This document shows, piece after piece, positions 34,211 to 58,371 of a stretch of 64,000 nt of DNA. The DNA lies in the NCBI RefSeq assembly GCF_030028105.1, contig NC_092383.1, positions 97,177,604-97,241,603 of the forward strand, given 5' to 3'. The position numbers and the translations under genes were made by a program. This DNA comes from Mobula birostris (lineage: Eukaryota). The notes under the pieces were generated by a model. The model was not told the DNA's origin. It saw nothing but the letters and a program-made list of their open reading frames with translations, and did no database searches. Position 1 is the first letter of the stretch. Every line of letters begins with the position of its first letter.

Positions 34211-35063
34211 CACAGAACAATCAGTGTTGCTTGGCAGCTGCCGGGATATTGTGCCATCTTTTGGGAAAGGTCTTGCAGTCCTATTGTTTCAAGGAATGGT
34301 TCCATAGTTTCCCGAAATAAATGGGCAGGCACAGGCCCCCTCCGGTCCTAATCCTGCATCATTCTCTCCCTACTGGTTTCACTTTACAGTCTCTTTATCT
34401 CACCACCCTCAAATCCCACTCCTTTATTTTCCCTTCCTCTCTTTCCTCCAATCTCCAAATCCACCCGTCTTCCCAACTGCCCCAATCTGTCTCCCACCTG
34501 CACCAGCTCCCTTGTCGTCCTCTCACTGTGTCTCACCTGCTCTGCTCCAGGTCCGTGTATCTCACCACCTCAGATCCCCTGTGCTTCCCCGATGAACCCA
34601 CTCCTTTCTCTGCCTCCTGCCTTCCCTCACTCTGCCCACCCTCCCTGCGACCCCTCCCAGTATATTCTTCCCTCCCTCCCCCTCCCCCCCAGATTTTCAT
34701 GCTCTCCTTCTCTTGCCCCTTCGATCACTCCGAGTATCCTCACACCTCTCCGCATCCACACTCCATACCTTTCCCTCCTCTCCACTCTCCTGCCTCCTCT
34801 CCTTCCCTCTGACCTTTGACATCCCCTCCTCCACTGTCCACCCCCAACTGTCCCTCTGCCTTCCTCCCTCCGTATTCCATACCTCATCCCCTCTGCCTTC
34901 CATTCAACTGACCCACCCATCTGTGTGTGGTGGTGGGGGGTCCGAACAGGAGACAGGAGAGGCAGGTAGGGAGAGGGAGGGAAGGGGAAGAGAGGAATGA
35001 GGAGGGAAGAGTGGAGAGGAAGAGGATGATGGGGATGGGGAGAAGGGAAGAGGTGACGGGGAG

Positions 35064-35113
35064 TCATTCGGCCTTGTGGAGTCTGCCTTCTGCTCCGGTG
35101 CCTGGGCGGGAGC
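35064..35113 (-). CDS. Cassette A cytoplasmic exon (SSRPGTGAEGRLHKAE*)
   Basis: Acceptor ctctgtcccccacag, phase 1, open to TGA; conserved in copy B. Confidence 0.75.
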
Positions 35114-35704
35114 CTGTGGGGGACAGAGGAGAGATGTCAGTTCACCCTGTGAGGGGTCTGAGGTTTCAATTACTTTCTCATCACACTAGGACCTCTTCAC
35201 TGCTGAGGGCAATGTCATGTGGTCTCTCTTGTCTGATCTGGAAGAAAACTCTCTCCCTCTCCCAGTCTCAATGTCTCAAGTCTCAAGTCTCCATATCCCC
35301 CCTTGTGGTTTGTATCTTGTATTGTCCTGGACTTTACATCTCCCCCTTCCCTATTTTTATATCTTCCTCTTTAGAACTGCATATCCGCATGTTCCCAATC
35401 TCCACATTCCACCATCCCTCTGTCCTTATCCCAAACCCCTGGTCCCTGTTATACTCGTTCAGATTAAACGAGGAGTGAACGATGAAGAGTGCAGAGTCTG
35501 GGACAAGAGCGATTCAGAGAACTGAGGTGGAAGAGATTGAGAGATCTGGGACAGTGGAGGTGGATGGGATTCAGAGTCACAGGGGGGTGGGATTGACAGA
35601 CTGAAACGGGGATTTTAAACACCGGTCTGAATCCACCCCTCACTGTTGACACTACCCTTCAGAACAACAGATTTTCACTGGAAACACACAAAAACAGTTC
35701 TCAC

Positions 35705-35803
35705 TGATAACGTGTACGGCGACTGTGACTGAGAGCAGAATCAGGAGCAGGACGGCAATGATTGTGGCCCTCAGCCGACATCCACAGAGACAGCTTCTCT
35801 CCG
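35705..35803 (-). CDS. Cassette A stalk/TM exon (AERSCLCGCRLRATIIAVLLLILLSVTVAVHVI)
   Basis: NAGNAG acceptor, donor A|gtgaga, 99 bp, phase 1-1, 20-residue hydrophobic run; conserved in copy B. Confidence 0.85.
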
Positions 35804-36029
35804 CTGCTGAAAGAGAGAGGATCACGGATTATATAGACGGTACCAGGCCTTCTCCAGCCCCACCTTCCCAACACTGACTAACATCACAAACCCATGGACA
35901 TCACTGTCCCATCACACACATTCAGGGCAGGGATTAAATACAAAGTAAAACTCTCTAAGTCCAATCATACCCTGCTGGGCTACAAGTCAGGTACTGGATT
36001 ATGCTAGTTTCTCATTACACACTATCCTG

Positions 36030-36905
36030 GTCAGGGAAACACCACCTTCTCCTACTCAATGTCAGCAAGACTGTGGAGCTGATTGTTGCCTTCAGTAGGA
36101 GGAAAGCAAAGGTTCAATTGCCAGTCCACATCGGAGGATCAGAGGAGGCAATGAACATCAACTTTAAAGTCCTTTGTGTTATGATTTCAGAGGTCGGTCC
36201 TGGGAGTAGCACGTAGGTGCGTTTACAATGAAAGCATGGCAGCACCTTGACTTTCACAGGAGTTCGTGAAGATTCAGCATGACATTGAAAACTTTAACAA
36301 ACTTTTATGATGTGTAATGGGGAGTATGTTGACTGGCTGAATCACAGCCTGGTATGGAAATGCTAATGCCGTTGAGGGAAAAATCTTGGTGCATATGATT
36401 CAGTCCATCAATGGTAAAGTCTTCCCCACCATTGAGCACATCTACACAGGGCACCGATGCTGGAAAGCAGCACCATTATCAGGGATCGCCACATCCACTG
36501 TCACGCAAACTTCTTGCTGCTGCCATCAGGAAGAAGATACAGAGCCTGAGGACTCACACCACCAGGTTCAGGAACAGTTACCATCCCTCAACCACCAAGG
36601 CTCTTGAAACAAAGGGGATAACTTCACTAAACTTCACTAGCCTCATCACTGAACTGTTCCCACAACCTTTGGACTCACTGTCAAGGACTCATCTCATGTT
36701 CTCGATATTTATTGCTTATTTATTGTTGTTATTATTGCTTCTTTCATTTTGTATTTGCAATTTGTTCTCTTTCACTCACCAGTCGAACACCCAGTTGGTG
36801 CAGTCTCTCACTGATTCTATGATGGATTTATTTAGAAAGCTGCAAGACAATGAATCTCAGGGTTGTATATTGTGACATATTTGTACTTCCATAATAAATT
36901 TACTT
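36030..36905 (+). mobile_element. Rex1-type 3' fragment in the C2-TM intron of cassette A
   Basis: LLLNVSKTVELIVAF...; HTTRFRNSYHP; AATAAA plus ACTTT-type tail. Confidence 0.75.
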
Positions 36906-36943
36906 TCAACATTATAATTCCAATTCCTGCCCCAGACACTCGC

Positions 36944-37231
36944 CAGACTTGTCCAGTTTACAGAAATCCCCCAGCCGGATCTGAGCTGTGTCCACACTGA
37001 CAGGGTTCCTGGCCTCACATCTGTACACAACAGTTTCTCTCTCTGCGGTGTGATGAACCTTCAGTGTCTCTCCGTGTTCCCAGAGGTGATGGGTTCTGTC
37101 GTTCACCACAGCTTCTCGTCCCCTCCACCATCTGAAGCTGGTGTGGTCACCAGAGGTCACAGAGCAGGTCAGGGTAAGCTCACAGGTCCCAGTGATGTTC
37201 TGAACTGTGATGTGTGTTCCTGACACCGGCT
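36944..37231 (-). CDS. Cassette A CD2/SLAM-type Ig C2 exon, with GC splice donor
   Basis: EPVS...TCELTLTCSV...W...YRCEARNPVS...DFC: four Cys and the NPVS motif typical of the SLAM/CD2 second domain; 288 bp, phase 1-1; donor G|gcgagt. Confidence 0.9.
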
Positions 37232-38354
37232 CTGGGTCTGGATGAAGAAATGAAAGATGAGTAAAGGAGATCTTTAAGGACACTGTATCCACCCCCCCCC
37301 CACTGTCTCTGACAGTCCCAAGTGTGGTTTAAGCCAATCTCAAATCATTTCCACCCACCTGTTTAACCCTTCCCTCAGCATTCAGTTCAGTCAGTTGCTG
37401 CTGGAGGAAGTTCCCACATGTTCTGTGCCCTCTTTCCCGACCACGCCCCGCACATTTCCATAAGAAATCCCCAGTATCCTATTTATGGTTCTGTAGCCCA
37501 GCAATTCTCTCCAGTTCACAACTGTTGTCACTGTTGTAACTGGCCCCAATGTCCCTTTGACACCTGAGTGTGTCCCACCCGGACCAGCCGGAATCTGGTC
37601 CAAGAGCAGCAGCCCTGGGACTGTGATCGACACAGACCCAGACTGGGACTGTCTGGTGAAACTGGCACTGTTCAGATCCTGGGTACACAGCCTCTCCACC
37701 ACAGAGCCACTCATTAACACACAGATCGGGGTGGAACCAGTAAGTTAATTCCAGTCTGGTGATGGGACACATTCTGGAAACAAAGTGTCAGAATGGGGAG
37801 TCAGTCACAGAGACAGTGCTGGGATCTGGGGCGAAAGATTCACCCTCGCTGTAAGCAGAGACAGATTAATATGGTGATGAACAGCAAACCAATCAAAAGA
37901 TTCTCAGACTGAACAAAGAAACAAAGGACCAGGCATTAAAATCGGACTGCAAATATAAGGCACAGCTGATAACAATGAACTAAGATAAGCGAATAAAGTG
38001 GGCAGGAAGGAGTTGGCCTTCTCATCTCTGCCTCCCTCTGGTGGCCAGTCCGAGGTTGACAGTTGGTTTCTGCAGAGCCATCGACTGCCCACCAACTGGA
38101 ACCTTGAATGGGCAACTTGGGAAGGACACAAGCAAACGGACCAGGAGATCCCCTGAACCGCCCACCACCACTCGCACTTTGGGTGTCTGAAGTTCAGGAG
38201 TGTGAGGCTGAAGTGGAGTCAAAACTGGAGGAGCCCACAGACTCATCCCAGTCACAGAAAGGGAAAACAGCGTGGGTGCCCGGAAACTGGTTTAGGAATC
38301 TATTGCACTGTACAGCTCTGTACAATACTCTCCACCCCAGGACCCCAGTGTAAA

Positions 38355-38815
38355 GGGGCAGTTGTAGCGAGGGTGAGGCCTCAAGCCTCGAGCTTGCCTG
38401 GTGTTGCAGACCAGGTGAGAGATAAAGAATCATTACAGCATGGTGTCTGTGGTTGGCTGGGACCTGACCTCTCCCATCGTTACTCCCCGTCAGTGTTCGA
38501 GTGGTGGAACGACAGGCTGGATGGCATGCGTCTGCACACTGCCGGGAGACCGTACCATCGATTGCTGGACATTGTCTCTGAAGGTCTTGGACAATACTGG
38601 TATATATATTTTATTATTCTAGTCAATACGCTTCTTTGCAAGCTGTTTTAAGTTATGTTCCTTGCTATTTTGAATGTTCGTCGCTACTTTGAACTTTGCT
38701 TTGTATTTTGAATGTTTTGTCCCACGGCTCCAGAGGAACCACCCCTTCAGCTGTATCTGTGTATGGTTTGAATGATAATTAATCTTGATTTGATTTGATT
38801 TTGAATTTGATTTGG
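38355..38815 (+). mobile_element. Retroposon-like insertion with (ATTTG)n tail, only in copy A
   Basis: Absent at the homologous point in copy B (after GTGTAAAGGGGCAG); ends in GATTT repeats. Confidence 0.55.
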
Positions 38816-41800
38816 AGCTAGCATGCTCCCCAGTGACGTCCTCCCGTTCTAGGTACAGGAACAGCTGGTGCTGGAAAGGAAAACCACGGTGAAGGAAGTT
38901 CTCCCGAAGTCTGAGCAGGATTTGGGGGGGGAAACCAAACCCCCAGAAGAGACAGCTGGGGGAGGAGGAACTCACCAGCAACAAGGGTCGGAGGTTAGAA
39001 ATGAAGACCCTCTCTGCAAAAGCCTCCAGTGGGACCGCCAGCAGCAGGTTCCCCCACCCCCACCACCATAATTCATCAGTTCAGGGTCAGGGACACAACC
39101 CTCTCAGCCATCAGGGAGAACACAGCTTCCCAGACACCACAGAGGCTGAAGGGCCAACACCTCCAGCCATTGCTTTCACAAAGACCCCAATTGTCATATT
39201 TGGTTATCCAGGGCTTTTTTGTCCATTTTCTCAAACCAACGTCCTGAAAGGTGACATGGCCACAGGAATAACCGGAACTGTAGAACCGTGGCTGGATCTG
39301 ACACCGTCAGTCATTTGGCTCACTACGTCTTCCATTCCCCACTCTAGCCTCTTCTGTCTTCTCCTCAGCCACCTGTCAGCTCCCCCTGCTGTCCCTCCTT
39401 CTTCCCTTTCTCCCATGGTCTGTTTCTTCTCCTGCCAGATTCATTCTTCTCCAGTTCTTTACCTTCCCCACACACCTGGGTTCACCTGTCTCCTCTAGCT
39501 AGTCCTCCATCCCTGACCACCACCCCCATCTTTTTGTCTGTGGTATTCTCCCTTCAATTCCAATTCTGAAGAAGGGTCTTCCTCTCCATAGATGCTGCCT
39601 GAGCTGCAGAGTTCCTTCAGCATTTTGTGTGCGTTGCTCTGGATTTCCAGCATCTGCAGAATCTCATGGATGAGTATCAATATGATGTTGTTTTTAGCAC
39701 CGACACCACCAATTACAGCAGAATCACAGACAACATGGCAATATACTGTAGAACCAATCACAGGGAGATGGGAAAATGAGAGTGAAGACAGGAACACAAG
39801 GGACATGTCGGTGATCTCTCTACACTGACCCTGCAGCTTGGGAGAGACTTCTTCACCCAGGTCAGTTGGAGCCTCATGAATATTCAAGAAGTTGACAGAA
39901 TATACACTCTGCCTGTTTCCCGATTCTGGATTTTGGATTTCTCTGGATGTTTTGATCTCTGCCTGAACTTTGACACCAACTTTGATTGCACCTCGGGATT
40001 TGTTACTCAATTAATATCACTGTGTGCACAGTACTGTGCCTGTGATTGGATCCCTGCTCCAGCGTCCTGACACAATGGCCTTTGAGTGTTATGGACCGTC
40101 AAAGTCATTTGTTGCATCTAAATATGGGAATTAAAATAAATCCATTTATCTTTTTAAAATTTAAGCTGAACCGCATGCATTGTATGGAAATATCAATTTT
40201 GCATGGACAGAAGATGTACCACAATCTTGTTGTCCAGAGCAATGACAATAAGGTCCTGTTTTATTCTGTTATATTCTTAGTTTCCTCTGAGTTTGTTGAA
40301 AACTCCACTCTGGATCAGATCATCCTGGGAGCATCGTGCACACTTCCAGTCTGCAACACTTCACATTTATCAGGATTAAATTCCACCTAGCATTGCTCTG
40401 CCTGATTTACCAGCTGTTCAACGTTTTCCCGTATACTCAGGATCTAAAACTCCACCAAGTTTCATGCCACTGTGCAGTTACCTCTCACACCTCGTTTGCA
40501 GATCAGCACTGTGACAGTCAAAGTACTGATCCCTATAGCACACCCTGGCTCACAGGCTTCAACCCACCAACATAATTCTCCATCTCCCTCAGCCTTTGAT
40601 TTCCAAGTGTGTGGTTGTGTCTGTGTACTGTGTCACTCACTGGGACACTATATTCAGTGTAATGAATACACAGGGTCTCACTCAGCACAGACCAGCATGA
40701 AGGCTGAGGAATAAACACGTTGCTGAGCTCAGACCTCAGTCTGAGCAATTACCAAGCAGCGCTTTGAGAAACCTATGGGATATCTGGAGTCCATGTACAT
40801 GACAGACCAGACCTTTGACCGGGGGATACAGTGGGATCTGTTGAACTGTGACCCACAGATACAGAACACTGATAAGGATGAAGAATGTCACCCCCTCTGA
40901 GAGACAGCACTCTACTTTCCCCCTCTCCTTCCATCTCCCCTCCCTACCTCTCTCCCTCCCCTCCCTCTTCCCTCCACACTCCCTGTCTTGCCCTTCTCCC
41001 ATAGCCCTCTCCCATTCCCCCTCTCCTGATCACCCTCACCCTCTCCCCCATCTGCCCTACCACCCTCCCCCTCCTCCTCTCCCCCACCCCTTATCCCCCA
41101 CCCACTCTCACCCAAACCCTCTTCTCCACCTTCCCCTTCCCTCCCTCTGCCCTCTCCCTCCTGGGCTGGACGTGTCTACCAGCCAACCTGGGCAAGTGAA
41201 CGGGGTAAAGAGGGAGCTCTCCAGTCAGAGCAATTAAAGTCGGTCACTGTCCCTTCAGGTTAACAGCCTCACCCTCCTAATCTTCCAGCCATTGGTTCCT
41301 CCATGCACTCCCTCAAATCACTCCCTCAAACCTCACAAAGCTGAAATTCTCTGCCATACTCTGCTGCTCACTCAGAAGCTCTATCTCCTTGCAATTAAAT
41401 CCTCCTGTCTTCAGTTTTGTCCTTCAGGACGGCAACAGGTCCCAAGCAAGCCCACGATTCATAAACGGTGAGGTAGTGGAAAGGGTGTCTAGTTTCAAGT
41501 TTTTGGGGATGAATATCATTGAGAAGTTTTCTTGGTCCATCAACACAGCCTCGATAGTAGGGAAGGCACAATGGCACCTACACTAATGGAGGTGTTAAAG
41601 GAGAGCTGATCTGCCTCAAGAATTGCCGGCCATCTTTTATCAGTGTGTAATGGAGACCATACTGACATACAAAATGACAGTGTGGTACTCTAGCTGCAGC
41701 AAGACAGATCACAAATCACTGGTGATTGGGAATGCTCAGCACGTCATTGGGACTCAACTACCAGACCTGGAGACAACCTACAACTCTCGATGCCTACAGC

Positions 41801-43179
41801 ATGCTTATAACATCATTAAAGACCCATCCCATCCCGGACACTGTCAGTTCAATCTTCCATCTGGTAGGAGATAGGAACATCTTAGCCAAGACAGGAAGAC
41901 TGCATACTTACCTCTCCCATCCCAAACATTCATATACAGATCAGTAGTGAGTTACCTCTCACACCTCATATGCAGATCAGTACTGTAAGAGTCAAAGTAC
42001 TGATCCCTATAGCACACCCTGGGTCACAGGCTTCAACTCACCAACATAATTCTCCATCTCCCTCAGCCTTTGATTTCCAAGTGTGTGGTTGTGTCCATGT
42101 ACTGTGACACTCACTGGGACACTATGTTCAGTGTAATGAATACACAGAGTCTCACTCAGCACAGCACAGCATGAAGGCTGAGGAATAAACACCTTGCTGA
42201 GCTCAGACCTCAGTCTGGGCAATTAACAAGAAATACCCTGGGTAACAGACAGAATAACTGGGATCTGTTGAACTGTGACCCACAGTTACAGAACACTGAT
42301 AAGGATGAAATCCTGAGGCTTCATTAGACATTGGTCAGACCGCATGGAGTATTGTGAGCAGTTTTAGACAACTTATCCAAGAAATGATATGCTGGCACTG
42401 GAGAGTTTCCAGAGGAGGTTCTCAGGATTTGTTTTAGGAATGAAAGGATTAACATATGAGGAGCATTGAATGGCCCTGAGGCTGTACTCACTGGAATTTA
42501 GCAGTATGAGTCAGGAGGAATCTCACTGAAAGCTATCGACTGTTGAAAAGTCTTGTTAGAGTGGATGTGGAGAAGATGATTCGTGTAGTGAGAGAGTCTG
42601 GGACCAGGGCCATAACCTTCAAATAGAGGCACATCCATTTAGAACAGAGGTGAGAGGGAATTCGAGTAGCCAGAGTGTTGTGAGTGTGTGGAATTCATTG
42701 CCACAGAATTCTGTGCAGGCCATCATTCCGTGTATTTACAGTGAAGGTCATGGGTTCTATATCAGTCAGGGCATCAATGGTTAAAGAGAAGGCAGAGGAA
42801 TGGGGTTAAGAGAAGTAATAAATCAGTTAGGATTGAATGGTGGGTCAGAATTGATGGGCTGAATGGCCTAATTCTTCCCCTTTTTCTTATGGTCTAGACC
42901 ATTCAGCCCAACCACGTCAGCCCCTCCTACCCCATCAACCTGTGCTCAGCTCCCCTAGCCTCCGAGCCACCAGGTCTATGCTGCAGTGCTCTCTGACTGT
43001 CTCACTCTGTGACCCTCTCAAACTATTAAACATAAACAGAAATGTATGCCCTCTGCTTTCAGACACCACTCCTGTGGAGAGCGATATTCCTCCCACCTCC
43101 CATATTCACGTTACTTATCATTATGTGTATGACTATCTCGTCTCCCCTCAGTCTCCTCCACTTGAGGGAAATCACAACA

Positions 43180-44600
43180 GCACATCGTCTCTCCTCTCAC
43201 TGAAATGCTACATCCAAAATTCCAAGTATTTATTCTGCATCCTGTCCAGAGTAATCACATCCTTCGAGATTGCACACAATATGCCAATCTTGTCCTATCT
43301 GTACTTTGTAATGTTTCAACATAATGGTGTAACACTTGTCTGTGTCCTGCACAATGAAGCCAAGCACGTCAAAAACACACTCACCACCCTTTCTGACTGT
43401 GCTGTCAAATTCGGTGATTCTGGGACGTACACCAAGAATCTTCTGTTTCTCTGCACTGCTGACAGCCCTCCCATTCATGGTGAATGTCCTTCCCTGTAAT
43501 GTTCCCCAAAGCCATCATCTCATTTGAACCAGGATTAGATTCTATTGGTCACTGCCCACCTTAACAGCTGATCAACATCATCTTGTGAGGGGAAATCGAC
43601 TGTTTCCCTCACTGTCAGCAACTGGTCAATTTTGGTGTCAACTATGTACAACTCATCAAACTGCCTACATTCACGATCCAGATACAACAGACACAAAGAT
43701 CTCAGCACTGATCTCTGTGGGACACCACAGGCTACAGTTCACAAACGCAACCCCCCCCACCATCCTATTACAAAGCTAATTTTAGATCCAATGTGCCAAC
43801 TTTCTCTGGATCCCATGGACTCTCACTATTTGGTCTACTCTTCCGTATCAAAGGACTTACTGGATGGAGACTATGTCAACCACATTGTCCTGATCAATGC
43901 ATTTTGCTTCCTCTTCAAAATATTCCATTACATTGTACTGACAGAGCTTTTTCTAATGGAGCCAGGCTGATGAACTTTGATTAATTCCCCCTTTCTAAGA
44001 TGTTAATCCTGTCTCCCATTATTTCCGGTAATTCCTCTACCATTGATGTTGGACTCACAGGTTTATTACTGCTGCCCTTATTGAAGAAAGGGATCACATT
44101 TACTGTCCCCCAGTAATCTGCAGCTCATCTGTGACCAGAGACCCCAAGAAATGAGTTGCTAGATACTGTGTTATACAATTTCACCAACACCCTCCCTGAA
44201 ATCTGGTTCCACACAAATCTCCTTCGTGAGTACAGATGACATGTGTGCATTGTATATCACACCACATCCTGTAGCTCCACCTCTCTACAATTGCCACTTT
44301 GGTCCCACATGGTCTCTACTCTTTCTCTGATTACTCTCCTGGCCTTAACACATTGGCACCTACTCAAAGTTTGTCTCTGGCTTCCTGATTTCTATTTCAC
44401 ATTCTTGCCCTACACTCTAGATAGTGCTGAAGGGCCTCCAGTGTTTTCAGTTCAATCTGGTGAACCATTTGTTTCCTTCTTTTTCAAACCTTTCCATATC
44501 CCGAGAGATCCAGTGTCTTTGTACTTGCTGTCACCTCTCACCTCAATGAGAATGCCTTATCCTGAATTCTCATTACTTTGATAGGAGTTTGAGGAGATCT
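43180..44600 (-). mobile_element. Highly degenerate CR1
   Basis: Minus translation MNGRAVSSAEKQKILGV... echoes the CR1 RT C-terminus; SGVPQ-like remnant near 43720. Confidence 0.65.
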
Positions 44601-44619
44601 GGCATGTCACCAAAGACAC

Positions 44620-45120
44620 TTGCAATTCTCTACCGATGTACTGTTGAGAGCATTTGAACTAGCTAAATCACTGTCTGGTGTGACGGGAGGGGTTGCCTAC
44701 AGAGAATTGAAAAAACCTGCAGAGAGTTGTAAACTCAGTCAGCTCCATCATGGGCACTATCCTCCAGAGTATCCAGGACGTCTTCAAGGAGCGATGCTTC
44801 AAACAGGCAGCATGCATCATTACAGACCCCCAATACCCAGGTCATGCCTTCTCATTGCTACCATCAGAGAAGAGGTACAGAAGCCTGAAAGTGCACACTC
44901 AATGATTCAGGAACAGCTTCTTCCCCGCCGCCATCAGATTTCCAAATGGACACTCAACCTCAGTCTGTTTTCATTTTTATTTGTGCACTACTTATTGAAT
45001 TTAACATATACACACATACTGGAATTCACATTTTCTATCATTATGTATTGCAATGTACTGCTGCTGCAAAGACAACAAACTTCATGACATTTGCCAATGA
45101 TATGAAACCTGATTCTCATT
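44620..45120 (+). mobile_element. Rex1-type 3' fragment
   Basis: Similar to other Rex1 3' ends in the window (GGAACAGCTTCTTCCCC...GCCATCAG; AAACCTGATTCT tail). Confidence 0.7.
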
Positions 45121-45144
45121 CACCTTTGAATAATTCCCAATACA

Positions 45145-45410
45145 GAGAGGGCGGTTGTAAGGAGGAATTACTGGTGGGCTTGCTTCTGGGCCTGGCCAAG
45201 AAGACCATTCACAGGTCTAGGCGGCTTAAAGTCGGCCAGGGCCGACAGCCTGCCTCTCTTCCAAGGATGTGCTCGTGCCTGGCTGTCCCTGGAGAGGGAG
45301 CATGCCATCATTATGGGTACACTGGGAGATTGCCTTGAGCAGTGGCCCAACCAAGGAATTGACTGCTTTACAGACCGTAGTAATCACATTATAATTCAAA
45401 TTTATTTACT
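45145..45410 (+). mobile_element. L1/Tx1-clade ORF2 C-terminal fragment
   Basis: EELLVGLLLGLAKKTIHRSRR...SLEREHA-like translation. Confidence 0.65.
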
Positions 45411-48299
45411 AACTTGTAAATACTGAATGTGTGCACCTTGTGTATTATTTGTGTAAATAACTTTTATAGTTTTGAAAAAGAAAGACAGACTTTTTTGTGT
45501 CCGTTGTTGTACTAGTTCTGTGAAATGACTCAAAAGATTGTAATTCTTCCTCATTAACCCTATCAGAATTGTCTTGTGGCCCAGGACTAAAATCCTCCTC
45601 TTCCAACTCACATCTTCTCTCCACTGGACCGTCTTTAGAATGAGAATTTCCCTCCTATTTCTACTACATTGGTAGAATTTGTTCACTCCCATATCAGTCG
45701 GCAGCGCATACGGGGAAGTTGGTGGAGATAATTCAGGAGGGAGAGGCTGCCATCACACCCAAGTTGGGTGAGTCTATTCAATGCTCGGAAAAACTCACTT
45801 CACGTTTCTCATCAGCCTACCGTCCTCCCCTCCGTGCAATATAGAGCTCAGCAATTATCAACAGCCTCCCCTATCTCGCGTCCCAAACAGAATAAACACA
45901 GTGCCACTGTACAACTGCCACACTGGGCTGAGATTGCTACTGGGGTTGCTCGGACACTGTCCAACACTGAGAGCGCTACCATTGCACGTTGTGTGACGTT
46001 CAGAGAACAATGGTTTTATTTTATTAAATCACGATCTCTCGCAGAGCTCTCATGGAACCCCAGTAGAGAAATTCTCTATTATACACCTGTGCCCATCTCT
46101 CTCTGATTTAGGGAGGTTAAAAGTACATTTATTATCAAAGTATGAATACATTATACAACTTTGAGTTTCGTCTCCTTACAGGGAGCCAAAAAAAACCCCA
46201 GAAAATCAAACATCCAATGTGCAGAAAAAATTATGCAAACAATAAATGCAAGCAAATAGCATCCAACTCACCCTCAAATTCTCCCAGATCATCCCCAGCT
46301 TCTCTCTACTGTCTTGATTTCTCTGAATCCATCGCAAGAAACTTTACCACAAACCCACCAACTTCCTGTTACCTACACCAGACCCTTTTCCATCATGTTC
46401 TTTGTAAGGACTCCATTTCTTTCTCACAGTTTCTGTGTCTCACGTTGGGATGAGATCTTCCAGGCCAGAATATCGAAAATATCCTCCGTTTTTCAGCACT
46501 GTGGTAGATGAAGTCTTCAACCTCATATCCTCGATTTAACAAACCTCTGGTCTCAACATACTTCCCCCCAGACACTTTGCTCTGTGACTAAAGGAGGTGT
46601 AACATGTCCCTACACCTCCTCCCTCCCTCATCACCTTCCAGATGAGGCAGACATTCACATGCCCCTCCTCCAACCTTGTCGGCTGCAGCCGGCACTCTAA
46701 TTCTGACCTCCTCCACCCTGATGAGACCAATCACCGACTACGTACCAACACTCAGTCCACTGATGCCAACTGAAGCACCTGGTTCTGAGTCATTTTAGTC
46801 CTTATCTCCATTCCCTCTCTGACCTGATTGACTTTAGCTTCCTCCTCTGCCAGGATGAGACCAAACACAACCGGAGAAACAACACCTTGTATTCTGCCTG
46901 GGTAGTCTAAAACCCAATGCCATATACATGGTTGAATTCTCCAATCTCAGATAAACTGTTCCCCCTCTGTTCCTTTTCTTTCTCCTAATCTGCCCCGTTC
47001 CTCCTACACCCAGCATACCTCCCTATCAGTCCATTTCCTTCCCCTTCCTCCATCTGCCAATCACCTACACACTCCCATCACTGGGTCCCCACCCACTCTC
47101 TTCCCATCTGTTCTCTCCACCTCCCTTATTTGGTTCCATGTTTCATTTCTAATCAGATTCTATCATCTGCAGCCCTTCATCTCTTCCAAGCCTTTGTCAC
47201 TATTTGCACCCTCCTCTGCTTCATCTGTCTATCAACCCCTCCCCATTTAGATCCACCTATCACCTCCCAGCCTTCCTCACTATTTCACTCCTCCTCTCCT
47301 CCTCCTGCCTATCATCCAATAATTTGGATCCACAAGTCACCTCCTCCTCCCCCTCTCTCTTTATATTGAACATTCTCCCTCTATCCGTCCGGAGAAGGGT
47401 CGTGACTCGAAACGTTGACAGTCTGTTTCCCTCCACGGATGCTGCCTGACCCGTCGAGTTCCTCCAGCAGATTGTCTGTTGCTTCAGATTCCAGCATCTG
47501 CAGTTTCCTGTCTCCCCACAGAATGATCGAGGTTGCTCGGCAGCTGCTGGGATGTTGTGCCATGCTTTGGCCCAGCTCCCCCCTGGTCCTAATCCTGCAT
47601 TGTTCTCCCCTACTAGTTTCATTTTACAGTCCCTTTATCTCACCATCCTCAAATCCCACTCCCTTATTTTCCCTTCCTCTCTTTCCTCCAATCTCCAAAT
47701 CCACCCGTCTTCCCAACTGCCCCAATCTGTCTCCCACCTGCACCAGCTCCCTTGTCGTCCTCTCACTGTGTCTCACCTGCTCTGCTCCAGGTCCGTGTAT
47801 CTCACCACCTCAGATCCCCTGTGCTTCCCCGACAAACCCAGTCCTTTCTCTGCCTCCTGCTTTCCCTCACTCTGCCCACCCTTCCTGCTACCCCTCCCAG
47901 TATATTCTTCCCTCCCTCCCCCTCCCTCCCGGACCTTCATGCTCTCCTTCTCTTGCCCCTTCGATCACTCCGAGTATCCTCACACCTCTCCCCATCCACA
48001 CTCCGTACCTTTCCCTCCTCTCCACTCTCCTGCCTCCTCTCCTTCCCTCTGACCTTTGAAATCCCTTCCTCCACTGCCCACCCCCAACTGTCCCTCTGCC
48101 TTCCTCCCTCCATATTCCGTACCTCATCCCCTCTGCCTTCCATTCAACCGACCCACCCATCTGTGTGTAGTGGTGGGGGGTCAGAACAGGAGACAGGAGA
48201 GGCAGGGAGAGGGAAGGAAGGGGAAGAGAGGAATGAGTAGGGAGGAGTGGAGAGGAAGAGGATGATGGGGATGGGGAGAAGGGAAGAGGTGACGGGGAG

Positions 48300-48349
48300 T
48301 CATTCGGCCTTGTGGAGTCTGCCTTCTGCTCCGGTGCCTGGATGGGAGC
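48300..48349 (-). CDS. Gene B cytoplasmic exon (SSHPGTGAEGRLHKAE*)
   Basis: Acceptor ctctgtccccccacag, phase 1, stop at 48300-48302. Confidence 0.75.
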
Positions 48350-48937
48350 CTGTGGGGGGACAGAGGAGAGAGGTCAGTTCACCCTGTGAGGGGTCTGAGG
48401 TTTCAATTCCTTTCTCATCACACTAGGACCCCTTCACTGCTGAGGGCAATGTCATGTGGTCTCTCTTGTCTGATCTGGAAGAAAACTCTCCCTCTCCCAG
48501 TCTCAATGAAAAGTCTCAAGTCTCCATATCCCCCCTTGTGGTTTGTATCTCATATTGTCCCGGATTTTACATCTCCCCCTTCCCTATTTTTATATCTTCC
48601 TCTTTAGAACTGCATATCTGCATGTTCCCAATCTCCACATTCCACCATCCCTCTGTCTTTATCCCAAACCCCTGGTCCCTGTTATACTCGTTCAGATTAA
48701 ATGAGGAGTGAAGGATGAAGAGTGCAGAGTCTGGGACAAGAGCGATTCAGAGAACTGAGGTGGGAGAGATTGAGAGATCTGGGACAGTGGAGGTGGATGG
48801 GATTCAGAGTCACAGGGGGGTGGGACTGAGAGACCGAAACGGGGATTTTAAACACCAGTTTGAATCCACCCCTCACTGTTGACACTACCCTTCAGAACAA
48901 CAGATTTTCACTGGAAACACACAAAAACAGTTCTCAC

Positions 48938-49036
48938 TGATGACGTGTACGGCGACTGTGACTGAGAGGAGAATCAGGAGCAGGACAGCAATGATTGTGG
49001 CCCTCAGCCGACATCCACAGAGACAGCTTCTCTCCA
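48938..49036 (-). CDS. Gene B stalk/TM exon (VERSCLCGCRLRATIIAVLLLILLSVTVAVHVI)
   Basis: Acceptor ttttgccag, donor gtgaga, 99 bp, phase 1-1. Confidence 0.85.
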
Positions 49037-49649
49037 CTGGCAAAAGAGAGAGGATCACGAATTATAGAGACGGTACCAGGCCTTCTCCAGCCCCACCCTC
49101 CCAACACTGACTAACATCACATACTCACGGACATCACTGTCCCATCACACATATCCAGGGCAGCGATTACAGACGAAGTAAAACTCTCTAAATCCAATCA
49201 TACCCTGCCGAGCTAGAAGTTAGATACTTTATTATGCTAGTGTCTCATTACACACTATCCTGGTCAGGGAAACACTACCTTCTCCTACTCAATGTCAGCA
49301 AGACTGTGGAGCTGATTGTTGGGATAACTTCACTAAACTTCACTAGCCTCATCACTGAACTGTTCCCGCAACCTATGGACTCACTGTCAAGGACTTATCT
49401 CATGTTCTCGATATTTATTGCTTATTTATTGTTATTATTATTGCTTCTTTCATTTTGTGTTTGCAGTTTGTTCTCTTTCACACACCAGTCGAACACCCAG
49501 TTGGTGCTGTCTCTCACTGATTCTTTGATGGATTTATTTAGAAAGCTGCAAGACAATGAATCTCAGGGTTGTATATTGTGACATATTTGTACTTCCATAA
49601 TAAATTTACTTTTAACATTATAGTTCCAATTCCTGCCTCAGACACTCAC

Positions 49650-49937
49650 CAGACTTGTCCAGTTTACAGAAATCCCCCAGCCGGATCTGAGCTGTGTCCA
49701 CACTGATGGTGTTCCTGGCCTCACATCTGTACACAACAGCTTCGCTCTCTGCAGTGCGATGAACCTTCAGTGTCTCTCCGTGTCCCCAGAGGTGATGGGT
49801 TCTGTCGTTCACCACAGCTTCTCGTCCCCTCCACCATCTGAAGCTGGTGTGGTCACCAGAGGTCACAGAGCAGGTCAGGGTAAGCTCACAGGTCCCAGTG
49901 ATGTTCTGAACTGTGATGTGTGTTTCTGACACCGGCT
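49650..49937 (-). CDS. Gene B CD2/SLAM-type Ig C2 exon
   Basis: Four-Cys C2 domain, 288 bp, canonical G|gtgagt donor; NPVS changed to NTIS. Confidence 0.92.
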
Positions 49938-52900
49938 CTGGGTCTGGATGAAGAGATAAAAGATGAGCAAAGGAGATCTTCATGAACACTCGATCCGCCC
50001 CCCACTGTCTCTGACAGTCCTAAATATGGTTTAAGCCAATCTCAAATCATTTCCACCCACCTGTTTAACCCTTCCCTCAGCATTCAGTTCAGTCAGTTGC
50101 TGCTGGAGGAAGTTCCCACGTGTTCTGTGCCCTCTTTCCCGACCACGCCCCGCACATTTCCATAAGAAATCCCCAGTATCCTATTTATGGTTCTGTAGCC
50201 CAGCAATTCTCTCCAGTTCACAACTGTTGTCACTGTTGTAACTGGCCCCAATGTCCCTTTGACACCTGAGTGTGTCCCACCCGGACCAGCCGGAATCTGG
50301 TCCAAGAGCAGCAGCCCTGGGACTGTGATCGACACAGACCCAGACTGGGACTGTCTGGTGAAACTGGCACTGTTCAGATCCTGGGTACACAGCCTCTTCA
50401 CCACAGAGCCACTCATTAACACACAGATCGGGGTGGAACCAGTAAGTTAATTCCAGTCTGGTGATGGGACACATTCTGGAAACAAAGTGTCAGAATGGGG
50501 AGTCAGTCACTGAGACAGTGCTGGGATCTGGGGCGAAAGATTCACCCTCGCTGTAAGCAGAGACAGATTAATATGGTGATGAACAGCAAACCAATCAAAA
50601 GATTCTCAGACTGAACAAAGAAACAAAGGACCAGCATTAAAATCGGACTGCAAATATAATCACAGGTGATAACAATGAACTAAGATAAGCGAATAGGGTG
50701 GGCAGGAAGGAGTTGACCTTCTCATCTCTGCCTCCCTCTGGTGGCCGGTCCGAGGTTGACAGTTGGTTTCTGCAGAGCCATCGACTGCCCACTACCTGGA
50801 ACCTTGAATGGGCAACTTGGGAAGGACGCAAGCAAACGGACCAGGAGATCCCCTGAACAACCCACCACCACTCGCACTTTGGGTGTCTGAAGTTCCGGAG
50901 TGTGAGGCTGAAGCGGAGCCAAAACTGGATGAGACCCACGGACTGATACACAGAGTCATCCCAACCACAGAAAGGGAGAACAACGTGGGTGCCCGTAAAC
51001 TGTCTTAGGAATCCGTTGCCCGGTACTGCTCTTTGCAATACTCTCCACCCCAGGACCCCAGTGTAAAGGGGCAGGACCCACACACAGAGAGAACTCCACT
51101 GGGCACTATCCTCGCTACTGAATCACAATTAGTTTCATTATTTTTCTTTCTTTTCAAATCTCCCGGGGTATTGGGAAAGGGGCCCCCGGGGTACTGGGAA
51201 AGGGGCTGGTTTGGGTCCGGAGGAACCGACCTGGCTGCAGACTGTGTTGCTACCTTCTACTCAGGAAGCTTCAAAGTTGGTGCAGTATAATCGTGCGAGA
51301 TTGTCTCGGACATTTCACTTGTGATTCATCAGTTCAGGGTCAGGGACATAACCTCCTCAGCCATCAGGGAGAGCACAGTTTCCCAGATACCATAGAGGCT
51401 GGAGGGCCAACACCTCCAGCCACTGCTTTCACAAAGACCCCAATTGTCATATTTGGCTATGCAGGGCTTTTCTGTCCGTTTTTTCAAACCAACATCCTGA
51501 AAGGTGACATGGCCACAGGATTAACCGGTACTGTAGAACAGTGGTTGGATCTGACACTGTCAGTCATTTGGCTCACTATGTCTTTCATTGCCCACTCTAG
51601 CCTCTTCTGTCTTTTCCTCAGCCACCTGTCAGCTCCCCCTGCTGTCCCTCCTTCTTCCCTTTCTCCCATGGTCTGTTTCCTCTCCTGTCAGATTCATTCT
51701 TCTCCAGTTCTTTACCTTCCCCGCACACCTGGGTTCACCTGTCTCCTCTAGCTAGCCCTCCATCCCTGACCACCACCCCCATCTTTTTATCTGTGGTATT
51801 CTCCCTTCAATTCCAATTCTGAAGAAGGGTCTTCCTCTCCATAGATGCTGCCTGAGCTGCAGAGTTCCTTCAGCATTTTGTGTGCGTTGCTCTGGATTTC
51901 CAGCATCTGCAGAATCTCATGGATGAGTATCAATATGATGTTGTTTTTATCACTGACACCACCAATTACTGCAGAATCCCAGACAACATGGCAATTACAC
52001 GGTAGAACCAATCACAGAGATGGGAAAATGAGACTGAAGACAGGAACACAAGGGACATGTCGGTGATCTCTCTACACTGACCCTGCAGCTTGGGAGAGGC
52101 TCCTTCACCCAGGTCAGTTGGAGCCTCTTGAATGTTCAAGAAGTTGACAGACATGTCTGCACCAGTAAAACTGGGCAAGTGACCGGGGTAAGGAGGGAGC
52201 TCTCCAGTTGGACCAATTATGTCGCTTTCAGTCACAGATCCCTTCAGTCTGTCATCCTCACACCCAGTATCTTCCACTGTCCACTCAGGAAAGTGTCTCC
52301 TTGCAAATAAATCTTCCTTTCTTTCAGTTTTGTCCTTCAGGGAGGCAAGAGGAACCAAAATGGTGAAGTAGTGGAAAGGATCTCCAGTTTCAAGGTTTTG
52401 TGGATGAACATCACCGAGGAGCTCCCTTGGTCCATCAACATAACCTCGACAGTAGAGAAGGCACAACAGTGACTACACTATCCAAGGTGCTTAAGGAGAG
52501 CTAATCTGCCCCAAAGATTCAATTCATTTCAAGCTTAATTGTCATTCGACCTGACATGAATCCAGCCAAACGAAACAGCATTACTCCAGGGTCAAGGTGG
52601 AAAACACAGTACAACAGTCACACAGTAAAACAGTAAACCCCACGGCTTGAGACCCTGAGTGCATTGAATGCCATCAGAATCTGCAGTCAACAACAACAGA
52701 GCTTGTCTTCTGCCAAGTGAAGGTCAGGGAGGGCAGCACCGACTCTGTCCTGGACGCCGCACCACACCGCCCCCTATGGACCACACCGGCTTTGACGCCT
52801 CTCTCCTGGCGGCTGCAAACAGGTGACACCGTGGCTTGAGGCCTGGATCTCGCTACGAGCAAGGTCATGTGGTTCTGCCGACATTCACTCCTGCTCCCCT

Positions 52901-53449
52901 CCGACACATCAGCGAATCGAACATGTGACAAACCATATTAACAACGTTCAGAAGGGTTTTGTAATAACAAGACGGCTACTCGCAATTAGACTATAGGCCT
53001 CCATCAGCTCAGGCAGCAGCATTTCTCCACCAGCGAGCAACTTCATTTTCTCCGCCAGTGAGCAACTCGCTGATGGTGTAGACCTGCAGTACTTTGAAGT
53101 TCTTAACGGAAAGCGGGATGTTATGATCATTAGAAATTTATTTAAATAAGAGAGTGGCACATTGTTAACCCTGTAGACTCTGCTGCATCAAGACAGCTCA
53201 CAAAGCACAGGTGATTGGAAAGGCTCAGCACATCGCTGGGACTCAACGACTGGATCTGGAGACAATCTACAACACTCAGTACCTGTGTTGCCCTCATAAC
53301 ATCATTAAAGACCCGTCCCACCCCAGACACTGTTCAATCTCCTGCCATCTCGCCAGAGATACAGAAACTTCCCAGCCAAGACAGTAAAAGTGAAAAGCAG
53401 CTTCTTCCCAAGGGTTATTGTGCAGCTGAATAATACTACATCCAGACTT

Positions 53450-53935
53450 GCCAATGTATCAGTACCTCCAGTTGAAGTCTGTCTTTTTGTGTGTTTCACC
53501 CCAGCTGTCAGTCTGTGGTTTTGTATTACCATGTGCTCCTGTCTCCGCTCCTGCTCTACTCCGGCCCCGGTATTACTGAGTACTCCGTCTCTCACCTGTT
53601 TCTCATTATTACCTGTATTGCTGCCACGTGTCTCATTGTGCTCCACCTATCATCTGCCTCTCTGTTTATTGCTCAGTGTATCTCAGTCCTGTGATTTCAT
53701 CAGATTGCACCAGTGAATTTTCCTGAGTCTTTCCAGCATTTGTATCTGTACCCTGTCTGTCTGAGTATCAACTCTGCCAGTTTCCCGATTCTGGTTTTTG
53801 ATTTCTCTGGATGTTTGGATCTCTGCCTGAACTTTGACACCAACCTTGTTTGGACCTTGGGATTTGTTACTCAATTAATATCACTGTGTGCACGGTACTG
53901 GGTCTGCGATTGGATCCCTGCTCCAGTGTGATAAA
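53450..53935 (+). mobile_element. Gypsy-like LTR fragment; only its 3' 170 bp survive in copy A (39900-40071)
   Basis: Pyrimidine-rich CACCTG-containing LTR-like sequence; copy A counterpart ends TGACA. Confidence 0.45.
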
Positions 53936-54963
53936 TACACAGGGTCTCACTCAGCACAGCACAGCATGAAGGCTGAGGAATAAACACCTTGCTGAGCTCA
54001 GACCTCAGTCTGGGCAATTACCAAGCAGCGCTTTGAGAAACCTATGGAATATCTGGAGTCCATGTACATGACAGACCAGGCCTTTGACTGGGGGTTACAG
54101 TGGGATCTGTTGAACTGTGACCCACAGATACAGAACACTGATAAGGATGAAGTCCTGAGGCTTCATTAGACATTGGTCAGACCGCACTTGGAGTATTGTG
54201 AGCGGTTCTGGGTCCCTTATCGAAGAAAGGATATGCTGGCACTGGAGGGGGTCCAGAGGAGGTTCTCAGGATTTGTTTAAGGAATGAAAGGATTAACACA
54301 TGAGGAAAATTGAATGGCTCTGGGGCTGTACTCACTGCAATTTAGCAGTATGAGTCAGGGGGAATCTTATTGAAAGCTTTCAAATATTAAAAAAGCCTTG
54401 TTAGAGTGGATGTGGAGAAGATGTTTCCTGTAATGAGAGAGTCTGGGACCAGGGGCCACAGCCTTCGAATAGAGGCACATTCATTTAGAACAGAGGTGAG
54501 GGAATTCCTGTAGCCAGAGTGTTGTGAATGTGTGGAATTCATTGTCACAGAATGCTATGGAGGCCACCATTTGGTATATTTGAAGTGAAGGTTCATGGGT
54601 TCTATATTAGTCAGGGCATGAAAGGTTACAGAGAAGGCAGGAAAATGGGGCGAAGAGAAGTAATAAATCAGCTATGATTGAATGGTGGGGCAGAATCGAT
54701 GGGCCGAATGGCCTAATTCTGATCCTTTATCTTATGGTCTATACCGCTGAGCCCAACCACTCCAGCCCCCTCCTACCCCATCAACCTACCCCCCTCATTC
54801 CCTACACCCTGTGTGCTCAGCTCCTCCAGTCTCAGAGCCACATGGACTTTGCTGGTGAATCCTTCACAGCCTCTGGTTCAGTCTCCGGGGATGTGGTGAA
54901 TGTGTCCCCCAGACTCAGCCACAATACACTGGGACTGTGAGCCCAGATCTGGCCACAGACAGT

Positions 54964-57939
54964 TAGAATCAGAATCAGGTTTATTATCACCGGCATGTGA
55001 TGTGAAATTTGTTAACTTAGTGGCAGTGAGAAAAGGACATGCCCTGGGTGCTGGAGGTCTTTAATAATAGACGCTGCCTTTCTAAGACACTGCTCCCTAA
55101 AGATGTCCTGGGTACTTTGTAGGCTAGTGCCCAGGATGGAGCTGACTAGATTTACAACATTCTGCAGCTTCTTTCAGTCCTGTGCAGTGGCCTCTCCATT
55201 CCGGACAGTGATGCAGCCTGTCAGATTGCTCTCCACAATACAACTATAGAAGTTTTTGAGTGTATTTATTGACATGCCAAAACTCTTCAAACTCCTGATA
55301 AAAGTATAACTGCTGTCTTGCCTTCTTTATGACTGCATCAATATGTTGGGACCAGGTTAGATCCTCAGAGATGTTGACACCCAGGAACTTGAAGCTGCTC
55401 ACTCTCTCCACTTCTGATCCCTCTGTGAGGATTGGTATGTGTTCCTTCATCTTACCCTTCCTGAAGTCTACAATCAGCTCTTTCATCTTACTGACATTGA
55501 GTACCAGGTTGTTGCTGTGGCACCACTCCACTAGTTGGCATATCTCACTCCTGTACGCCCTCTCGTCACCACCTGAGATTCTACCAACAATGCTTGTATC
55601 ATCAGCAAATTTATAGCTGGTATTTGAGCTATGCCTAGCCACACAGTTTTTATATATATATGAGAGAGAGAGAGAGTTAGAGAGAGAGAGTTAGAGAGAG
55701 AGAGTTAGAGAGAGAGAGTTAGAGAGAGAGAGTTAGAGAGAGAGAGTTAGAGAGAGAGAGTTAGAGAGAGAGAGTTAGAGAGAGAGTGAGAGAGAGAGAG
55801 TGAGAGAGAGAGTGAGAGAGAGATTAGAGCAGTGGGCTAAGCACACACACCTGAGGTGCGCCAGTGTTGATTGTCAGCAAGGAGGAGATGTTATCACCAA
55901 TCCGCACAGACTGTGGTCTTCCAGTTTGGAAGTTTAGGATCCATTTGCAGAGAGAGGTTCAGAGGCCCAGGTTCTGCAGCTTTGCAATCCGGATTGCAGG
56001 AATGTTGGTATTAAATGCTTGGTTAGAGTCGATGAACAGCATCCTGATGTAGGTGTTTGTGTTCTCTAGGTGGTCTAAAGTCGTGTGGAGAGCCAATGAG
56101 ATTGCGTCTGCTTTTGACCTATTGTGGCGCTAGGCAAATGGCAACGGGTCCAGGTCCTTGCTGAGGCAGGAGTTCAGTCGAGTCATGACCAATCTCTCAA
56201 AGCATTTCATCACTATTAATGTAAGTGCAGCCTGGCGATAGTCACTAAGGCAGCTCACATTATTCTTCTTTGACACTGGTATAATTATTCCCTTTTTGTA
56301 GCAAGAGGGAACTTCTGCCTGTAGCAGTGAGAGGTTCAAAATATCCTTGAATACTCCCGCTATTTGGTTGGCACAGGTTTTCAGAGCCTTACCAGGTACT
56401 CCATCGGGACCTTCTGCCTTGTGAGGGTTCACTCTCTTTTGAGACAGTCTAACATCGGTTTCTGAAACAGAGATCACAGGGTCATCAGGTGCAGCAGGGA
56501 TCTCCACAGCTGTAGTTGTGTTCTCCCTTTCAAAACGTGCATGGAAGGCGTTGAGTTCATCTGGTAGTGAAGCATCGCTGCCATTGGGTTTCGCTTTGTA
56601 GGAAGTAATGTCTTGCAGTCCCTGCCAGAGTTGCCGTGCATCTGATGTCACCTCCAACCTCGTTCGAAATTGTCTCTTCACCCTTGAAATAACCCTCCAC
56701 AAATCATACCTGGTTTTCTGGTACAGGCCTGGGTCGCCAGACTTGAATGCACAGATCTAGTCTTCAGCAGACACTGTACCTCCTGGTTCATCTGTGGCTT
56801 TTGGCTTGGGAATGTACAGTAAGACTTTGTGAGCACACACTCGTCCACACAGGTTGAAATGAGGTCGGTAACAAATGCAGCATATTCAACCAGATTCAAA
56901 AATGAATCCCTGAATACAGTCCAGTCCACCGATTCAAAGCAGTCCTGTAGGCGCTCCTGTGCTTCCCTTGTCCAAACCTTCTTGGTCCTCACTACTGGTG
57001 CTGCAGTCTTCAGTCTCCGCCTGTACTCAGGGAGTAGAAGTACAGCTACGTGATCAGATTCCCGAAGTGAGGACGTGGATTAGCACGGTAGGCATTCTTG
57101 ATGGTGGTGTAACAATGGTCCAGTGTGTTGTTTCCTCTGGTGTTGCAAGTGACCTGTTGATGGGAATTGCTTTGTGATTTTTTTTCAGACTGGCCTGGTT
57201 AAAATCTCCCAAAACGATGGTGAAGGTGTTAGGGTGCGCTGTTTCGTGCATGTTGATCCCATTGCTCAGATCATCTAAAGCCTGATTGACACTGGCCTGA
57301 GGTTTAATGTAAACTGTTACCAGAATGACCCCAGAGAACTCCCGTGGTGGGTAAAAATGATGACACTTTACTGCTAGATATTCCAGGTCTGGAGAGCAGA
57401 ATTGGGACGGCACTGATATATTTGTGCACCAAGAAGAACTGATCATGAGGCAAACTCCTCCACCTCTGCTTTTGAGAGACTCTATAGACCAATCCTGGCG
57501 GTGAAGAGTAAACCCGTCCATCTGAATCACTGCATCCGGTAGGGAAGGGGTTAACCAGGATTCCGTGAAACAAAGGACACACGCGGTCCTAATGTCCCTC
57601 TGATCCAACACCCTGGCTCTGAGATCATCGCAGCTATTCACCAGAGACTGCACGTTCGCCAGCAAGGCCGTCAGTCTGGGGAGTTTAAAACCCCGTTTCA
57701 TTAAACTCACTTGTAATCCTGATCTTCACTCACGCTTCCTCCGAGGTTTTCTCCGTGGGCACTTCCGACCACAGACTGTTTTTTCCCGTCGGTTTTAAGC
57801 AGCAATAGTTCATTTAAACGCATTAAGACAGCTTTGTTGACTGTACTGACCTTGGAAGCAGTTGTGCTGGCTGAAACGGGAATATTTAATCGTATCCATT
57901 GGGAGTTCTGCTGCTACTTGAGTCGCCCCTAGTATGTTG
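54964..57939 (-). mobile_element. Near full-length Rex1/Babar LINE in the V-C2 intron of gene B
   Basis: APE endonuclease ORF (LANVQSL, CFTESWL, GGGVCLMI, LGDFN), RT pieces (KAEGPDGVPG, KFADDT), (GATTCT)n tail at 54964; host intron continues on both sides. Confidence 0.95.
55645..55826. repeat. (GAGAGAGAGTTA)n microsatellite inside Rex1 RT
   Basis: About ten 12-bp units plus (GA)nGT variants. Confidence 0.95.
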
Positions 57940-58047
57940 CAGTGGGGTTCAGTAAAAAGGGGGACACACAGGATCTGCCCTCACCCATTAATTAGGAATG
58001 TTTCAGGAACTGGTGAAACCCGGGCCCCTCCGCGGTGTCTCACTCAC

Positions 58048-58371
58048 CGTACACCTCCAGTCGCACTGTTGTTATACTTTCAGCTCCTGAAACTGCTGCT
58101 GCAAACATCACCTCGTAATCACCGGAGTCCTCTCTCCGTAGATCATGGATTTCCAGACTGAAATTCCCACGATGAAAGGTTCTCCGTCGCTTGTACTCGT
58201 CAGGACCGAAGTAGCTAACGTTACCCTTCGAGTACTTCACTATCATGTTTCTGGGTGATACCCATCTCCACACAACATCAGCAACGTCCAGTCCGACTGG
58301 GATCCCAGAAGGTAAGGAGACCGAGTGTCCCCGAGTTCCGTTCACGGTGGTCGGGGAAGCCCCAGTCCCAG
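58048..58371 (-). CDS. Gene B CD2/SLAM-family Ig V-set exon, no cysteines
   Basis: Acceptor ttgtctcctcag, donor G|gtgagt, 324 bp, phase 1-1; FSLEIHDLRREDSGDYEV...TVRLEVY; N-glycosylation sequons NGT, NVS, NFS. Confidence 0.93.

Follow-up and report, generated by a model that had tools for sequence, protein, structure and literature searches.

When a receptor gene carries a single variable (V) exon that is followed on the same strand by two complete sets of C2, transmembrane (TM) and cytoplasmic tail exons, are both sets put to use, or is one of them a by-product of duplication? This question is raised by a 64,000-nucleotide stretch of the genome of the giant manta ray, Mobula birostris (RefSeq assembly GCF_030028105.1, contig NC_092383.1, positions 97,177,604 to 97,241,603), hereafter the window, whose own numbering is used throughout. 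Its minus strand carries a CD2/SLAM-family receptor gene with one V exon and, downstream of it, two C2-TM-tail cassettes, of which B is proximal and A is distal. A first-pass annotation of this locus proposed that the V exon could be spliced to either cassette, and it offered as a fallback that cassette A is a V-less copy that has not yet decayed. It is the fallback that the evidence favors. Cassette A is probably a partial tandem duplicate that lacks a V exon, has not yet been disabled and is not used, typical of the birth-and-death debris of the ray gene cluster. The anatomy that underlies both proposals, one minus-strand V exon and two C2-TM-tail sets, was recovered by self-BLAST, MAFFT, tblastn and hidden Markov model (HMM) searches.

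The annotated gene consists of the V exon and cassette B. Two RefSeq proteins from M. birostris, XP_072133951.1 (P0224, 273 aa) and XP_072133952.1 (P0178, 240 aa), which derive from the 99.8-Mb chromosome of assembly GCA_030028105.1, match V plus cassette B at 100%, whereas the identity of cassette A to them is only 92.8%. Exon limits were checked base by base and against P0224. The V exon (58048-58371, minus strand, phase 1/1) matches residues 20-126 of both proteins at 100%, is recognized as a Pfam V-set domain (E 7e-8) and is bounded by the splice sites CAG/CTGGG and TACG/GTGAGT, where the slash marks the exon boundary. On the same strand, the C2 exon of cassette B (49650-49943) has a GT donor and matches residues 127-224 of P0224 at 100%; it is followed by the TM exon (48938-49036; VERSCLCGCRLRATIIAVLLLILLSVTVAVHVI) and the tail exon (48300-48349; SSHPGTGAEGRLHKAE), with a TGA stop codon at 48302-48300. 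The true V/C2 junction in the RefSeq proteins reads ...LEVY/DPEPVS. The first-pass annotation had placed the V exon and both cassettes correctly, but its C2 acceptors, at 49937 and 37231, were 6 nt off the true positions of 49943 and 37237. Small additional cytoplasmic exons between TM and tail can be ruled out, as the RefSeq proteins join the TM exon straight to the tail exon. The gene spans 20,260 bp, which puts its start a few kb past the end of the window; a search of the window for the leader exon and its peptide, MDAVSLFSCFWLTLSIIN, found that it is not encoded there. In isoform X2 (XP_072133952.1) the C2 exon is joined directly to the tail exon and the TM exon is skipped, giving a soluble form. 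A TM-skipped isoform has also been modeled in Hypanus sabinus (P0176), and a C2-skipped form in Hemitrygon akajei (P0012).

Cassette A repeats this exon set on the minus strand, with an open C2 exon with an intact acceptor (36944-37237), a TM exon (35705-35803) and a tail exon (35064-35113; SSRPGTGAEGRLHKAE, then stop). The two C2 exons differ by 9 nucleotides and 7 amino acids, as had been counted at the outset. Beyond C2, one residue differs at the C2/TM junction (Ala in A, Val in B) and one in the tail, for a total of 9 residues. Apart from the junction residue the TM peptide is identical, and the cassettes were not found to differ in anchor, tail or effector properties. All exons of V, cassette A and cassette B are phase 1, and the gene thus has two complete, splice-compatible terminal exon sets on one strand downstream of one V exon, with the caveat that the donor dinucleotide of C2-A, at 36943-36942, is GC. 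This donor reads TCTG/GCGAGT, as against TCTG/GTGAGT in C2-B. The change weakens the site, but its remaining positions fit the consensus well, and it may still be functional. GC donors account for ~1% of human introns and are usually intrinsically weak (PMC3167603), and a T>C change at donor position +2 leads to exon skipping in TREM2, a gene of the immunoglobulin superfamily (PMC5931963). The earlier statement that all of these exons are open with usable splice sites is accurate for the reading frames and the acceptors, but the C2-A donor is non-canonical. At the C2/TM acceptor, a CAGCAG tandem is present in cassette A (window 35804-35809) and GCCAG in cassette B; in Mobula hypostoma, a single Ala at this junction distinguishes isoforms X1 and X2 (P0226 and P0164). 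The M. hypostoma isoforms and the tandem in cassette A suggest NAGNAG-type acceptor wobble in this short-tail subfamily.

What cassette A lacks is a V exon of its own. No V exon for copy A was detected in the 37-58 kb region by tblastn with the V peptide, by blastn with a word size of 7 or by an HMM of 153 family V domains, and a diverged V exon between 43 and 46.5 kb, which would have refuted the proposed alternative splicing, was not found either. Across the entire window, tblastn and the family HMM return only one V exon on the minus strand. The extent of the duplication is in keeping with this. Comparison of the copies by self-BLAST and MAFFT global alignment delimits two collinear segments, both on the minus strand: copy B (46563-54854), which comprises cassette B together with the greater part of the V-C2 intron and 1.7 kb of 3' flanking sequence, and copy A (33392-42972), which is without a V exon and in which the introns are retained and collinear. 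Over the exons and adjoining introns the two share 95-96% identity, which drops to 89% in the distal intron and to 71-85% over the 3' flank. Homology ends at 42972 in A and 54854 in B, which bears out the initial observation that the intron landmarks of copy A continue to about 42960 and are then lost short of the V exon. Once a long interspersed nuclear element (LINE) specific to copy B is discounted, the breakpoint lies a few hundred bp short of V. Past the breakpoint, copy B continues with ~110 bp of intron, then the degenerate LINE, then ~0.1-0.3 kb to the V exon. The segment that was duplicated would have started ~0.2-0.45 kb past the V exon and ended ~1.7 kb after the stop codon.

Database evidence on the use of cassette A points in one direction. 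Both RefSeq isoforms use cassette B. Among the 226 family proteins retrieved none is a product of C2-A, the best matches (94.8%) coming from other loci, and the 90% clusters able to absorb a cassette A product contain only NCBI models with cassette B or from other loci. The NCBI pipeline is not known to model extra isoforms without transcript support; a frequent junction between V and cassette A would probably have given a third isoform. One further candidate, P0166 (XP_072133950.1), is a third full copy located outside the window, with the same leader and a cassette that is equidistant from A and B. It was ruled out as a product of V plus cassette A because identity in the V domain is 84% and 8 residues of C2, TM and tail differ from those of A. 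In M. hypostoma, a V-less C2-TM-tail RefSeq model, XP_062922422.1 (P0225, 146 aa), carries a deletion of five residues in C2 and a Leu where Phe161 is otherwise invariant in the family, suggesting that V-less copies decay in a relative.

Divergence between the cassettes is much the same at coding and non-coding sites. The exons differ at 15 of 443 sites (3.4%), and the cassette introns and 3' flank at 89 of 1920 (4.6%). The pN/pS ratio of A vs B is 0.49, which is not significant (Fisher p 0.22), and the residue changes that could be polarized, in small counts, fall five times in B and twice in A. A pairing of one constrained with one neutral copy would account for these values roughly as well as any other. 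In a neutral simulation, the probability of finding no stop codon after 10 substitutions is ~0.76, which, multiplied by ~0.47 for no indel, gives ~0.36. A neutral copy would still be open about one time in three, and the open frame of cassette A is thus not evidence of function. Furthermore, as the products are near-identical, there is little for selection to maintain. From the match of RefSeq to cassette B only, the GC donor and these statistics, we infer that cassette A is unused.

The gene would then operate from a single promoter, with V spliced to cassette B to give the membrane isoform and TM skipping giving the soluble isoform. Cassette A, without a leader, a V exon or a known promoter, and placed 11 kb past the stop codon of B and beyond two AATAAA signals, would contribute little or no protein. 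It would be a young, unprocessed fragment that evolves neutrally with occasional gene conversion from B, and its frame would be open through too little elapsed time and not through selection, with one donor already changed from GT to GC.

Several observations weigh against an unused cassette A. It is without a stop codon or frameshift, its acceptors and polypyrimidine tracts are intact, and, with every exon in phase 1, joins from V to C2-A or from C2-B to C2-A would be in frame. An AATAAA hexamer stands 637 nt past its stop codon (34423-34428, minus strand), and the homologous site in copy B (47663-47668) reads AATAAG. The first AATAAA hexamers after cassette B, at 46133 and 46025, lie in the spacer between the copies, 2.2 kb past the B stop; with no AATAAA over that distance, read-through toward A is conceivable. 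Cassette A is also the more conventional of the two. Gly133, shared by 38 of 38 relatives and by cassette A, is replaced by Glu in B; A likewise retains His189 and Pro205, and the corresponding B residues, R189 and T205, occur in 0 of 38 relatives. The family C2 HMM likewise scores A at 165.7 bits and B at 158.8. Although the counts are small, a copy that is nearer to the consensus is the opposite of what is expected of a decaying copy beside a constrained one. Finally, in M. hypostoma a V-less copy has received a protein-coding annotation from NCBI. The consensus residues of A and the odd residues of B could reflect either an expressed gene that is evolving fast or conversion of A from other paralogs. 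The V exon of the annotated gene has unusual residues at conserved positions of its own (W55 and R86, compared with the 38 relatives), which, together with the changes in C2-B, indicates that the expressed gene as a whole is diverging quickly.

The rival explanations draw on these same observations. Were cassette A an alternative 3' cassette, transcripts reading through B would be spliced from the donor of V (58048) or of C2-B (49650) to the C2-A acceptor at 37237 and polyadenylated at the AATAAA at 34428, giving either a membrane isoform that differs at 9 residues or a V-C2-C2 form. The shared strand, the open frames and uniform phase, the lack of AATAAA for 2.2 kb after B together with AATAAG where A has AATAAA, and the family-consensus residues of A all agree with such an arrangement, as do the exon-skipping isoforms that are common in the family in M. 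birostris, H. sabinus and H. akajei. Yet no RefSeq isoform or database protein joins V to A, even though two isoforms were modeled; the donor of C2-A is GC; the acceptor of B, identical in sequence, is closer to V by 12.7 kb; two almost equivalent products would leave little to select; and the statistics give no indication that purifying selection acts on both copies. An alternative 3' cassette is, on this balance, unlikely. Much the same standing, and certainly no better, belongs to the broader proposal that in some cells or conditions V is joined to either cassette, or to both C2 exons in series, as transcription running past cassette B, with its lack of a canonical AATAAA, would permit, so that the better-conserved A would serve as a second 'constant region' of a non-rearranging receptor.

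A different possibility is that cassette A is transcribed independently of V, from its own and possibly transposable element (TE)-derived promoter, into either a non-coding RNA or a protein made of C2, TM and tail. XP_062922422.1 of M. hypostoma offers a parallel, and cassette A has an open frame and an AATAAA of its own. That parallel is itself compromised by its 5-residue deletion and its change at the invariant Phe; in addition, a search of the window upstream of C2-A found no equivalent of the M. hypostoma-type start (MNPPN), no signal peptide precedes the C2 exon, and cassette A is not included in any protein model of M. birostris. We consider an independent product quite unlikely. Least credible of all is an assembly artefact, in which copy A would be a retained haplotype or a mis-joined contig and the animal would have only one cassette. 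Assembly errors are a known risk in clusters of immune genes, but divergence between the copies is 4-6% in the core and up to 11-29% at the edges, each contains different TE insertions of 0.5-1.6 kb, a 3.6-kb unique spacer separates them, and there is no N in the window, whereas duplicates of haplotypic origin should be almost the same in sequence and should contain the V exon. Because of the 5% divergence, the copy-specific insertions and the gap-free sequence, the copies appear to represent real paralogy as opposed to haplotype retention, and an artefact is very improbable.

Each of the two copies has private sequences. The LINE in the V-C2 intron of copy B lies in gene orientation on the minus strand at approximately 54963-57750, its 5' limit falling between 57710 and 57940. 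It retains an endonuclease-type open reading frame (ORF) at 57057-57710 (Pfam Exo_endo_phos), ORFs resembling reverse transcriptase and a GATTCT-repeat tail that ends near 54963. Copy A has a 527-bp insertion of its own in the C2-TM intron (36089-36615, plus strand), a LINE 3'-end fragment antisense to the gene with an ORF that resembles the C-terminus of LINE ORF2. Larger private blocks are found in both copies further upstream in the V-C2 intron. In copy A, a 285-bp direct repeat (40472-40756 and 41947-42230, 93.7% identical) flanks ~1.2 kb inside one such insertion, and its two units may be the long terminal repeat-like ends of a small element. The spacer (42973-46562) consists of unrelated sequence with no V-region homology and contains an inverted LINE 3' fragment at 44574-45121. 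Against this background of divergence, one tract of the intron 5' of C2-A (37340-37940, minus strand, ~600 bp) is 99.4% identical to B 50044-50640, in surroundings that differ by 4-6%, and by 12% in the 100 bp adjoining the acceptor. It is a probable tract of recent gene conversion that ends short of the exon, and such a level of identity implies that the copies still exchange sequence.

The gene itself has the hallmarks of the CD2/SLAM family. The translation of the V exon contains no cysteine and thus corresponds to a V-set domain without the canonical intradomain disulfide, and the C2 domain contains C145, C151, C200 and C219, which are invariant or nearly so in 40 relatives and are all present in both cassettes. 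Pfam calls V-set and Ig_3/I-set domains, and phmmer against solved structures matches SLAMF6, SLAMF5 and CD48, at identities of ~20-24%. An AlphaFold 2 model of P0224 (mean predicted local distance difference test score 79.6) has its best Foldseek matches in CD48 (2dru), NTB-A (2if7), CD2 (1hng/1hnf) and CD58 (1ccz), with E values from 1e-14 to 1e-12. The RefSeq names of the family, SLAM family member 5-like and CD48 antigen-like, agree with these matches. The cytoplasmic tail, SS(H/R) followed by PGTGAEGRLHKAE, has 16 residues, with no tyrosine and no immunoreceptor tyrosine-based switch motif (ITSM; TxYxxV/I), and for this reason the gene is, by its sequence, a short-tail CD2/SLAM-like receptor. 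A search of the window for an ITSM-type tail exon, using P0177 and P0008 as queries, found none.

Mammalian CD2/SLAM receptors, among them CD48, SLAMF6/NTB-A, CD2, CD58 and the short-tailed SLAMF8 and SLAMF9, share the disulfide-free V-set and four-cysteine C2 domains of the manta gene. The ITSM is found in the SLAM receptors proper and is absent from CD48, SLAMF8 and SLAMF9, as it is from the manta tail. Unlike the mammalian receptors, the manta gene has a Cys-rich juxtamembrane motif, ERSCLCGC, and belongs to a batoid-specific expansion in which V exons are homogenized within species. The same leader, juxtamembrane motif and tail are found in relatives from Pristis, Hemitrygon, Hypanus and Mobula, and the gene is part of a large paralog cluster on one chromosome. 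The V domains cluster by species rather than by gene type, which indicates concerted evolution or rapid turnover. A search of the available literature returned nothing relevant on SLAM/CD2 genes of rays or sharks or on the manta immune genome.

A few further features of the window are worth recording. A second V exon of the CD2/SLAM type lies on the plus strand at 11006-11353, convergent with the gene and with 47% protein identity; the window yielded no C2 exon to go with it. A 182-bp fragment at 58723-58904 (plus strand) is 92% identical to 11325-11506 (plus strand), which covers the 3' end of the plus-strand V exon, its donor and the start of its intron. This fragment stands ~350 bp upstream of the minus-strand V exon, inverted relative to it, and resembles the trace that a rearrangement or conversion involving both V paralogs would leave. 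Elsewhere, the window contains two minisatellites, one of 4 kb with 112 copies of a 36-bp unit and a very strong G-over-C skew (20388-24377) and one with 23 copies of a 34-bp unit (18722-19501).

Two kinds of known loci provide a frame for these observations. Duplicated constant cassettes exist at the T cell receptor (TCR) beta locus (C1/C2) and at the immunoglobulin heavy chain (IgH) locus (mu/delta), and TRBC1 and TRBC2 differ by few residues. As in the manta, these antigen-receptor loci have two near-identical or related sets of 'constant' exons behind the variable exons, on the same strand. There, V(D)J recombination, or else regulated polyadenylation and splicing, determines which cassette is taken, and the use of the cassettes is documented, whereas the manta gene has no recombination system and no functional difference between its cassettes. 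Unprocessed partial duplicates and pseudogenes are familiar from fast-evolving immune clusters, such as the KIR/LILR fragments and the expanded Cd244 copies of mouse SLAM haplotypes. The manta locus resembles these in its tandem birth-and-death, missing 5' exons, gene conversion and copy-specific TEs, and it differs from them in that cassette A is without a stop codon or frameshift and is nearer to the family consensus than the expressed copy.

Taken together, the locus would add another example of a familiar type of event to an annotated gene family. Should cassette A in fact be used, it would be a rare case of duplicate 'constant' cassettes that are selected by splicing in a non-rearranging receptor, and the functional effect would be small because the products are near-identical. 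If it is unused, there is a practical consequence for annotation, in that cassette A should neither be merged into the gene nor be called a separate gene. The locus would then offer a snapshot of birth-and-death evolution, with a partial tandem duplicate caught before its decay, in a large, poorly studied expansion of CD2/SLAM-like receptors in rays.

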